Positions 23,086 through 24,589 of a stretch of 64,000 bases of DNA are shown here, in pieces. Position numbers and translations under genes: made by a program. The notes beneath the pieces are model-generated. The model was given only the letters and a program-made list of their open reading frames with translations, was not told the DNA's origin and did not search any database. The DNA lies in the sequence record MN018232.1; one strand, given 5' to 3'. Position 1 is the stretch's first letter, and each line of letters begins with the position of its first letter.

Positions 23086-23777
23086 CATACGACTTTTCTT
23101 TCGCACATTCACCAGAAGGTTTTGATAATCACATTGACAAATCTATTCGGGGTTACTCAAACCTTCTAGAGGATACTGTATCGTTCTCTCGATACTTTGT
23201 GGAAGATCATACCAAAGTCGTTGATGTGGGTTGTTCTACTGGTAAACTTACCAAGATGATCCTTGCCAATAATCCAAATCGTAGACATACACAATACGTA
23301 GGTGTTGAACTTGCAGGTGGGTTCTATGATGATCTTGATGATAGGTACAAAGAAATTCGTAAAGACTATCCTTGGGCTATTCTTGAGTTTGTACGTGGTA
23401 ATATCACCAACTACGAGTTCAAGAACTGTTCTCTGGTGACTTCACTGTTCACTCTTCAGTTCATGCCCAAGACAACTCGTCAAGAGACCATCGATAAAAT
23501 CTACGAGGGTCTTAATGAGGGTGGTGCATTCATCTTTGCAGAGAAGTTGATGTGTCAAAATGCGTTCTTCCAAGAACTGTTGACATTCAATCACTACGAT
23601 TACAAACGTAAATCTTTTACTCCAGAAGAGATCATGGATAAAGAGAAGGAACTTCGTGATATGTTGAAACCAAATACTTGGGAAGAACTCAAGTCTATGA
23701 TATGGTGTGCTGGTTTCAAAGATTGTCAGATCTTCTGGAGAAATCATCAGTTCGTTGGAGTCATTGCTATTAAATGA
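23082..23777 (+). CDS. cmoA: CmoA-like carboxy-SAM synthase
   Basis: FDNHIDKSIRGYSNL, DVGCSTG, SLFTLQF, GGAFIFAEK, HYDYKR, AGF...F..IAIK align with E. coli CmoA motifs. Confidence 0.8.
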   Translation: MTYDFSFAHSPEGFDNHIDKSIRGYSNLLEDTVSFSRYFVEDHTKVVDVGCSTGKLTKMILANNPNRRHTQYVGVELAGGFYDDLDDRYKEIRKDYPWAILEFVRGNITNYEFKNCSLVTSLFTLQFMPKTTRQETIDKIYEGLNEGGAFIFAEKLMCQNAFFQELLTFNHYDYKRKSFTPEEIMDKEKELRDMLKPNTWEELKSMIWCAGFKDCQIFWRNHQFVGVIAIK

Positions 23778-24589
23778 TTGATTTTATTCTCACCGATATT
23801 ATCTCCCAAGAAGTCCCTACAGATGATGTGGGGATTTTGTTGTCTGGAGGTGTAGATAGTTTAAGTCTCGGTTTTGCTGCAGCCCGTGCGGGTAAAAAAG
23901 TTGATGCATATACTTTTCATCTTGAGGATGATAAGTCATATGATGCATTGAAAGCAGAAGAAGTATCAGCCAAGTTTGGGTGGAACTGTAAGACTATTGT
24001 AGTTCCTAAAGATAATCTCGCTCAAGACTTTCTTCGTCTAGTGAAAGACTATGATTGTAGAAAGAAGACACACTTTGAGTGTACCTTCCCCTTTCTCTAT
24101 GTTTTTCCTGAAATCACCAATAAGTATCTCTTGAGTGGTATTGGTGCTGATGGGTATTACGGTGTCAGTAAGAAAGCAGTTCTTCACTTCAAAGAACCGA
24201 AAGAAAGGTTTGATCAGTTCAGACGTAATTATTTCATGCCACATAACGTAACTGGATTTCGACAGATTGAACAGTTATGTAATGAAAGAGATATCAAACT
24301 TGTACATCCCTACATCTACCATGATGATGTAAGTGAATTCTTCTTCAAGTATGATTGGTATGAGCTCAACAAACCAAAACAAAAACAGATTGTCAGAGAT
24401 GCTTTTGAGGATGAGTTTAGTTGTATCAAAGCGGTGAAGGACCATATCAATCTTCAACTTGGGTCTAATATTGATCACTTGTTTGAAACACTCTTAGATG
24501 ATAAGATGCTAAATAATCGTGGTAGGAAGAGGGTCATGGATCTTGCCTCTGACTACGCATCATCTGGACAAGGAACACTTCCATTATGA
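23774..24589 (+). CDS. Asparagine-synthetase-like ATP-dependent (PP-loop) amide ligase without glutaminase domain
   Basis: LLSGGVDS PP-loop, LSGIGADG (AsnB SGEGADE), VHPY, KQIVRDAF. Confidence 0.75.
   Translation: MIDFILTDIISQEVPTDDVGILLSGGVDSLSLGFAAARAGKKVDAYTFHLEDDKSYDALKAEEVSAKFGWNCKTIVVPKDNLAQDFLRLVKDYDCRKKTHFECTFPFLYVFPEITNKYLLSGIGADGYYGVSKKAVLHFKEPKERFDQFRRNYFMPHNVTGFRQIEQLCNERDIKLVHPYIYHDDVSEFFFKYDWYELNKPKQKQIVRDAFEDEFSCIKAVKDHINLQLGSNIDHLFETLLDDKMLNNRGRKRVMDLASDYASSGQGTLPL

Follow-up and report, generated by a model that had tools for sequence, protein, structure and literature searches.

The asparagine-synthetase-like gene of Synechococcus phage S-B43 is very probably cmoY, whose product joins glycine to 5-carboxymethylcytosine in DNA

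What is an asparagine-synthetase-like protein doing between two methyltransferases in a phage genome, and what does it use as its amine? The question was raised by a gene in a 64,000-nucleotide stretch of DNA (the 'window'), for which the initial annotation proposed an amide ligase acting on carboxymethylcytosine. The amine donor was given there as unknown—ammonia, an amino acid or a polyamine—the product as a base perhaps not yet characterized, and the gene as the most likely source of new chemistry in the window. We can say with great confidence that the gene is SpCmoY of Synechococcus phage S-B43, the third enzyme of a cmoA–cmoY–cmoX hypermodification module (Table 1). Exactly this cluster, GenBank MN018232.1, has been studied by Yang et al. 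(Nat Commun 17:281 (2025), PMC12783734). The finding is a correct rediscovery, and not new chemistry: the family was described in December 2025 with S-B43 CmoY as its type member, its chemistry is published, and the expectation of novelty is outdated. A reading of the sequence alone had correctly predicted a pathway that reached print late in 2025.

The window is 100% identical to S-B43 and corresponds to positions 124001-188000 of MN018232.1. Megablast places window positions 23082-25704 at 147082-149704 of that record, with 100% identity over the full length, and 25 kb at either end of the window are likewise 100% identical and collinear (124001-149000 and 163001-188000, respectively). The ORF in question, which runs from ATG to stop, lies at 147774-148589, again with 100% identity, and is annotated as CDS QDH50619.1, 'putative asparagine synthase', flanked by QDH50618.1 ('methyltransferase domain-containing protein') and QDH50620.1 ('DNA-cytosine methyltransferase'). 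An annotated CDS with 468 relatives in the databases is a real gene, and not a chance reading frame. SpCmoY is placed by PMC12783734 in the same record, as an asparagine synthetase homologue adjacent to SpCmoA and SpCmoX. The primers used in that work to clone cmoA, cmoX and cmoY encode, in reverse complement and allowing for OCR noise, the C-termini of the three ORFs in the window; primer p4R, for example, encodes ...TLPL-stop, the C-terminus of the cmoY ORF. Judging from how the paper describes it, together with the GenBank record and the primers, SpCmoY is UniProt entry A0A514ABJ0. A search of BFVD returned no entry for the protein itself; the best match was a 31%-identical relative, also of 271 aa, with a TM-score of 0.90.

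Table 1. The cmoA–cmoY–cmoX module of phage S-B43, in window coordinates
Feature	Position	Strand	Remarks
cmoA (SpCmoA, carboxy-SAM synthase)	23082..23777	+	Matches TIGR00740 and 4GEK; ATGA overlap with cmoY start
cmoY	23774..24589	+	271-aa stand-alone AsnB-type synthetase domain; very probably the ATP-dependent 5-carboxymethylcytosine:glycine amide ligase; QDH50619.1
PP-loop SGGVDS, aa 24-29	23843..23860	+	Motif position; aligns to AsnB SGGLDS
SGIGADG, aa 121-127	24134..24154	+	Counterpart of AsnB SGEGSDE; human ASNS aligns in the same register
cmoX (SpCmoX, DNA cytosine-C5 carboxymethyltransferase, GC sites)	24586..25704	+	Identical to 8YF3; ATGA overlap with cmoY stop

The neighbours fit this identification. 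The upstream protein matches the TIGR00740 CmoA model (E 2.8e-33) and the structure of E. coli CmoA (4GEK; E 9e-28). The downstream protein matches Pfam DNA_methylase (E 5.9e-53) and is identical, at 372 of 372 residues, to chain A of PDB 8YF3, SpCmoX; it has the motif SPPC at 95-98, and Arg350 where ordinary C5-methyltransferases carry Asn. Both junctions in the trio are 4-base stop/start overlaps. A scan for signals between 20.5 and 28.5 kb found 23 sigma-70 promoters, no excess over shuffled sequence (21.5 +/- 4.6), and 3 terminators against 4.3 in shuffled sequence, none of them on the plus strand, so the limits of the operon are not given by it. GpC, the target site of CmoX, is under-represented in the window (observed/expected 0.75), and CpG is more so (0.50).

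What the three enzymes do is known from published experiments (PMC12783734). SpCmoA makes carboxy-SAM from SAM and prephenate, and SpCmoX (8YF3) carboxymethylates cytosine at C5 in the GC sites of double-stranded DNA, yielding 5-carboxymethylcytosine (5cxmC). When CmoX and CmoY are expressed together in E. coli, 5cxmdC (m/z 286.1) disappears and a nucleoside of m/z 343.1 forms instead, with matching MS/MS. With purified SpCmoY, described as being without an amidase domain, the product forms only if enzyme, ATP and glycine are present together, whether the substrate is genomic DNA or a 110-bp PCR product. The amine donor, then, is glycine, and the product is 5-glycylcarboxymethylcytosine (5gcxmC), the glycine amide of 5-carboxymethylcytosine. 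The DNA of native S-B43 virions contains 5gcxmdC and no 5cxmdC; approximately 10% of its C, and 75% of its GC sites, are modified. The composition of the window agrees with these figures: 14.5% of its cytosines occur in GpC, and 0.145 x 0.75 = 0.11. DNA substrate, need for ATP and glycine, product, and presence in virion DNA have all been shown, in other words, for SpCmoY itself, and the initial proposal of an amide ligase on carboxymethylcytosine is borne out. Of the three kinds of amine that it listed one, an amino acid, was right, and the donor and the base can no longer be called unknown or uncharacterized. The contrary outcome that had been envisaged—action on free aspartate or other small molecules, with carboxymethylated DNA left unchanged—is contradicted by the same experiments.

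CmoY is a synthetase domain only, because all of the comparisons that we made—Pfam, TIGR01536, hhalign and structure superposition—cover the C-terminal half of asparagine synthetase alone. The Pfam Asn_synthase profile matches aa 18-175 over positions 19-182 of its 354 (E 1.7e-14, 54.7 bits, cut-off 21), and the Pfam scan found no glutamine amidotransferase domain. TIGR01536 matches over just positions 252-369 of 517, in the synthetase half, and with 44.7 bits against a cut-off of 267.1. Profile–profile alignment with hhalign sets CmoY 5-212 on E. coli AsnB 215-438 (probability 94%, E 1e-7), such that the start of CmoY corresponds to AsnB residue 215, and the Ntn glutaminase part is absent. 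CmoY is a small, acidic AsnB-type domain, and Supplementary Table 1 of PMC12783734 likewise lists it as a stand-alone AMP-forming synthetase domain without an amidase domain. The initial annotation, which had reported a 271-aa synthetase domain with both motifs and no Ntn glutaminase, was accurate on each of these points, as ORF, motif positions, Pfam and hhalign agree.

The first of the two motifs, the PP-loop SGGVDS, is the signature of ATP pyrophosphatases, and binds the phosphates of ATP. The second is more unusual. E. coli AsnB has SGEGSDE at this point (347-353, counting from Met1), the two glutamates of which are E348 and E352 in the usual numbering. In the hhalign register this motif falls on SGIGADG of CmoY: E348 becomes I123 and E352 becomes G127, and D351 is kept as D126. 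Altered glutamates had been noted from the start, and the alignment agrees; that the E. coli motif is GEGSDE, and not GEGADE as then written, is trivial. Among 41 members of the family, position 123 is I in 23 and W in 15, and position 127 is G in 38. In this alignment Ile/Trp and Gly stand family-wide where AsnB has Glu348 and Glu352, respectively, an observation new in this analysis. A hydrophobic or aromatic residue in place of the catalytic Glu348 plausibly reflects an acyl substrate that is a DNA base, and not aspartate. Residues S24, G25, G26, D28, S29, G122, D126, G130, S132 and K133 are invariant in all 41 members. The basic residues that are invariant in the family, K98, K133, R150, R251 and R253, are candidates for the pocket that might hold the carboxylate of glycine; residues of this pocket are shown in figure form in PMC12783734 (Supplementary Fig. 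8a, b).

No close sequence relative of CmoY was found in the PDB, and a search of the PDB with the single sequence gave marginal matches alone (CarA, E 0.056). Searched with the family profile, PDB sequences returned carbapenam synthetase CarA (4.7e-6), beta-lactam synthetase (3e-5) and human asparagine synthetase, ASNS (5e-5). An AlphaFold (AF2) model built with the 41-member family alignment has a pLDDT of 92.1 and a pTM of 0.89; the pLDDT of the single-sequence AlphaFold model is 35.7. AsnB, human ASNS, beta-lactam synthetase and CarA all superpose on the former through their C-terminal domains, with TM-scores of 0.72-0.78 when normalized to the query, and ~0.42 when normalized to the two-domain targets. 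The top Foldseek matches in the PDB are beta-lactam synthetase (E 5e-12), carbapenam synthetase, human ASNS and E. coli AsnB (query-normalized TM-score 0.78); E-values lie between 1e-9 and 1e-12 for the AsnB/beta-lactam synthetase family, versus 1e-4 for other PP-loop enzymes such as LarE and TtuA. On this high-confidence model CmoY belongs to the AsnB/beta-lactam synthetase fold, an assignment that is also new here.

How might the reaction proceed? CmoA combines SAM and prephenate to give carboxy-SAM, from which CmoX transfers the carboxymethyl group to cytosine C5 at GC sites of double-stranded DNA, giving 5cxmC. CmoY and ATP would next activate the carboxylate of 5cxmC, presumably as an acyl-adenylate at the PP-loop with release of PPi, and attack by the alpha-amino group of glycine would then yield the amide, 5gcxmC, and AMP. 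The last two events—acyl-adenylate at the PP-loop, then attack by the glycine amine—were deduced by the authors of PMC12783734, who propose the intermediate. The fold supports an acyl-AMP intermediate in CmoY, which we infer by analogy with AsnB and beta-lactam synthetase. CmoY takes a free amino acid as its nucleophile instead of tunnelled ammonia, which explains why it has no glutaminase domain. The part played by the hydrophobic Ile/Trp that stands in for Glu348 is inferred, too. As for biological role, the modification presumably protects the DNA of the phage against host nucleases; for bare 5cxmC, HhaI is the one enzyme to which resistance has been shown.

Could the gene be what its names in GenBank and JGI say that it is, an ammonia-dependent asparagine synthetase that acts on free aspartate and serves the phage as an auxiliary metabolic gene? 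These product names and the Pfam Asn_synthase match speak for this, but the TIGR01536 score is far below its cut-off (44.7 bits versus 267), the glutaminase domain is absent, Glu348 and Glu352 of AsnB have become Ile and Gly, and cmoY overlaps cmoA and cmoX at both ends. Together with the demonstrated activity on DNA (PMC12783734), these points effectively refute a free-aspartate enzyme, and we give the idea almost no credence. We think equally little of the prospect that CmoY is a QueC-like PP-loop enzyme from a 7-deazaguanine pathway of DNA modification. Weak matches to QueC do occur, in Pfam (E 0.0018, 18.3 bits), TIGR00364 (E 0.0024) and PHROG 1550 (E 2.8e-5), but they are below threshold (18.3 versus 22 in Pfam, 17.4 versus 150.3 bits in TIGRFAM) and confined to the PP-loop region, aa 16-86; the fold search puts the AsnB/beta-lactam synthetase family far ahead of other PP-loop enzymes, and cmoY is flanked by cmoA and cmoX, and not by genes of the queuosine pathway. 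The published product, 5gcxmC, excludes QueC in any case (PMC12783734).

A subtler alternative accepts CmoY as the amide ligase of 5cxmC, but holds that glycine is not its sole or preferred amine, and that other amines or amino acids give rise to extra minor bases in the host. On the matter of glycine specificity, the text of PMC12783734 describes no amine panel or kinetics, and approximately 25% of the GC sites in native S-B43 DNA were counted as unmodified. Against this, in E. coli, where all amino acids were available, one new species alone, m/z 343.1, took the place of the 5cxmdC peak, and it was 5gcxmdC that native phage DNA showed (PMC12783734). We regard this alternative as very improbable. 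A milder form of it, that SpCmoY is perhaps not strictly specific for glycine and that a fraction of native GC sites bears other amino-acid amides of 5cxmC, strikes us as unlikely, though somewhat less so. On this milder reading, the Ile/Trp in place of Glu348 of AsnB might help to recognize the base.

CmoY has many relatives. The 468 found in the protein database at E <= 1e-5 are all ~263-287 aa long, and are therefore stand-alone synthetase domains, too. In Staphylococcus phage vB-SscS-F1 the genes occur in the same order as in S-B43, cmoA–cmoY–cmoX. On metagenomic contigs that encode relatives of ~50% identity the trio is permuted to cmoY–cmoX–cmoA, as judged by DNA_methylase and small methyltransferase genes. 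JGI Ga0066377_10000018, a contig of 44.5 kb, encodes a 49%-identical relative (L011, 4001-4849), and the 4 kb to each side of it contain no methyltransferase gene. Not all members of the CmoY family, therefore, adjoin cmoA and cmoX.

Closer to home, cmoY itself can be missing. Synechococcus phage RN05-S infects the same host as S-B43, Synechococcus sp. MW02, and is 92-97% identical to it in the flanks. Its cmoA and cmoX are separated by an A-rich spacer of 25 bp, and there is no cmoY (L006, 2501-4340): homology to S-B43 ends at window position 23778 and restarts at 24585, and the gap is exactly cmoY. Such a precise absence from a close relative, seen by comparing the two sequences, is new in this analysis. 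S-CRM01 (L007) likewise has cmoA and cmoX alone. Absent from both phages, cmoY thus behaves like an optional addition to a core of two genes. We predict that RN05-S carries bare 5cxmC and acts as a natural cmoY knock-out; with S-B43, it offers a ready natural comparison for what glycine adds beyond 5cxmC.

More distant relatives, of ~34% identity, are found in jumbo phages of Erwinia (48 records), Dickeya and Yersinia. In Erwinia phage pEa_SNUABM_23 (L002, 1953-6831) the CmoY-like gene stands in a row with genes for a homologue of CmoA (TIGR00740, E 1e-41), an unknown protein of 420 aa, a DgcN-like protein of the DUF1611 type (E 1e-91) and a protein resembling alanine racemase; the gene for a CmoX-like methyltransferase is ~15 kb away. 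The 420-aa neighbour was considered as a C5-methyltransferase and rejected, none being recognizable in its sequence. The racemase-like and DgcN-like neighbours suggest that this cluster may use a different donor, possibly one derived from a D-amino acid, and may form an uncharacterized base. A genuinely new base is more likely to be found among such diverged relatives, especially in the Erwinia jumbo-phage cluster, and thus outside the window.

Several other features of the window deserve mention in their own right. A gp41/DnaB-like helicase ORF of 312 aa with a GTG start, at 21214-22152 (+), is without the N-terminal 137 aa found in RN05-S, S-B05 and RB11-B, and homology starts abruptly at 21189. 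Next to it, at 20874-21185 (-), a divergent 2OG-Fe(II) oxygenase ORF of 103 aa matches positions 148-240 only, of 283, of its PHROG. The window lacks the S-B05 segment with DNA polymerase, UvsX and the 5' end of the helicase, and in S-B43 tblastn returned no match to it of at least 99% identity. The junction at 21186-21214 marks either the breakpoint of a rearrangement or a mis-join in the assembly. Small minus-strand genes occupy 14000-21200, where the GC content is 0.45-0.51, versus ~0.37 in the rest of the window. Two GenBank names in this region look wrong, to go by the motif matches: the 'helicase' at 14271-14660 (-) matches a PAAR motif (E 9.7e-6, just under the cut-off), and the 'polyprotein' at 16384-16554 (-) has a match above the cut-off to HicA toxin (E 9e-7) and adjoins a DUF7249 gene at 16554-16799 (-). 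Downstream of the module, a Lys/Glu-rich ORF of 391 aa at 27121-28296 (+) is unannotated in MN018232.1 and has no Pfam match; a 466-aa 'virion protein' is annotated at the homologous position of RN05-S. In S-B43 the 3' end of this ORF overlaps a convergent gene, 28203-29591 (-), by 94 nt.

How does CmoY compare with systems already known? From SpCmoY of PMC12783734 it does not differ at all: it is the same gene, with 100% nucleotide identity, the same coordinates and the same neighbours. The engineered carboxymethyltransferase M.MpeI N374K makes the same 5cxmC intermediate from Cx-SAM as the S-B43 module, but it is a product of engineering, is specific for CG, and has no ligase acting after it. 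The second cluster of ligases in PMC12783734 (A0A7T0Q3R0), unlike CmoY, keeps its amidase domain; ammonia derived from glutamine is the predicted donor, giving carbamoylmethyl-C, although the protein proved insoluble.

With the class B synthetase domain of AsnB and ASNS, CmoY shares its fold (query-normalized TM-scores of 0.72-0.78), the PP-loop SGGxDS, and the S-G...D core of the second motif, at an identity of ~16% in structural alignment; a global alignment in PMC12783734 gives 12.7% between CmoY and asparagine synthetase. Both kinds of enzyme activate a carboxylate at the expense of ATP and then form an amide. CmoY differs in being without the N-terminal Ntn glutaminase domain and the ammonia tunnel, and in having Ile/Trp and Gly in place of Glu348 and Glu352. 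The substrates differ as well: the acyl group belongs to a modified base in duplex DNA in the one case and to free aspartate in the other, and the nucleophile is glycine versus ammonia. The best structural and profile matches to CmoY are beta-lactam synthetase and carbapenam synthetase CarA, and they resemble it, too, in being AsnB-derived enzymes that adenylate a carboxylate and use an amine other than ammonia. Unlike CmoY, they have kept an N-terminal domain in degenerate form, their substrates are small molecules, and the amide that they form is intramolecular, the beta-lactam ring.
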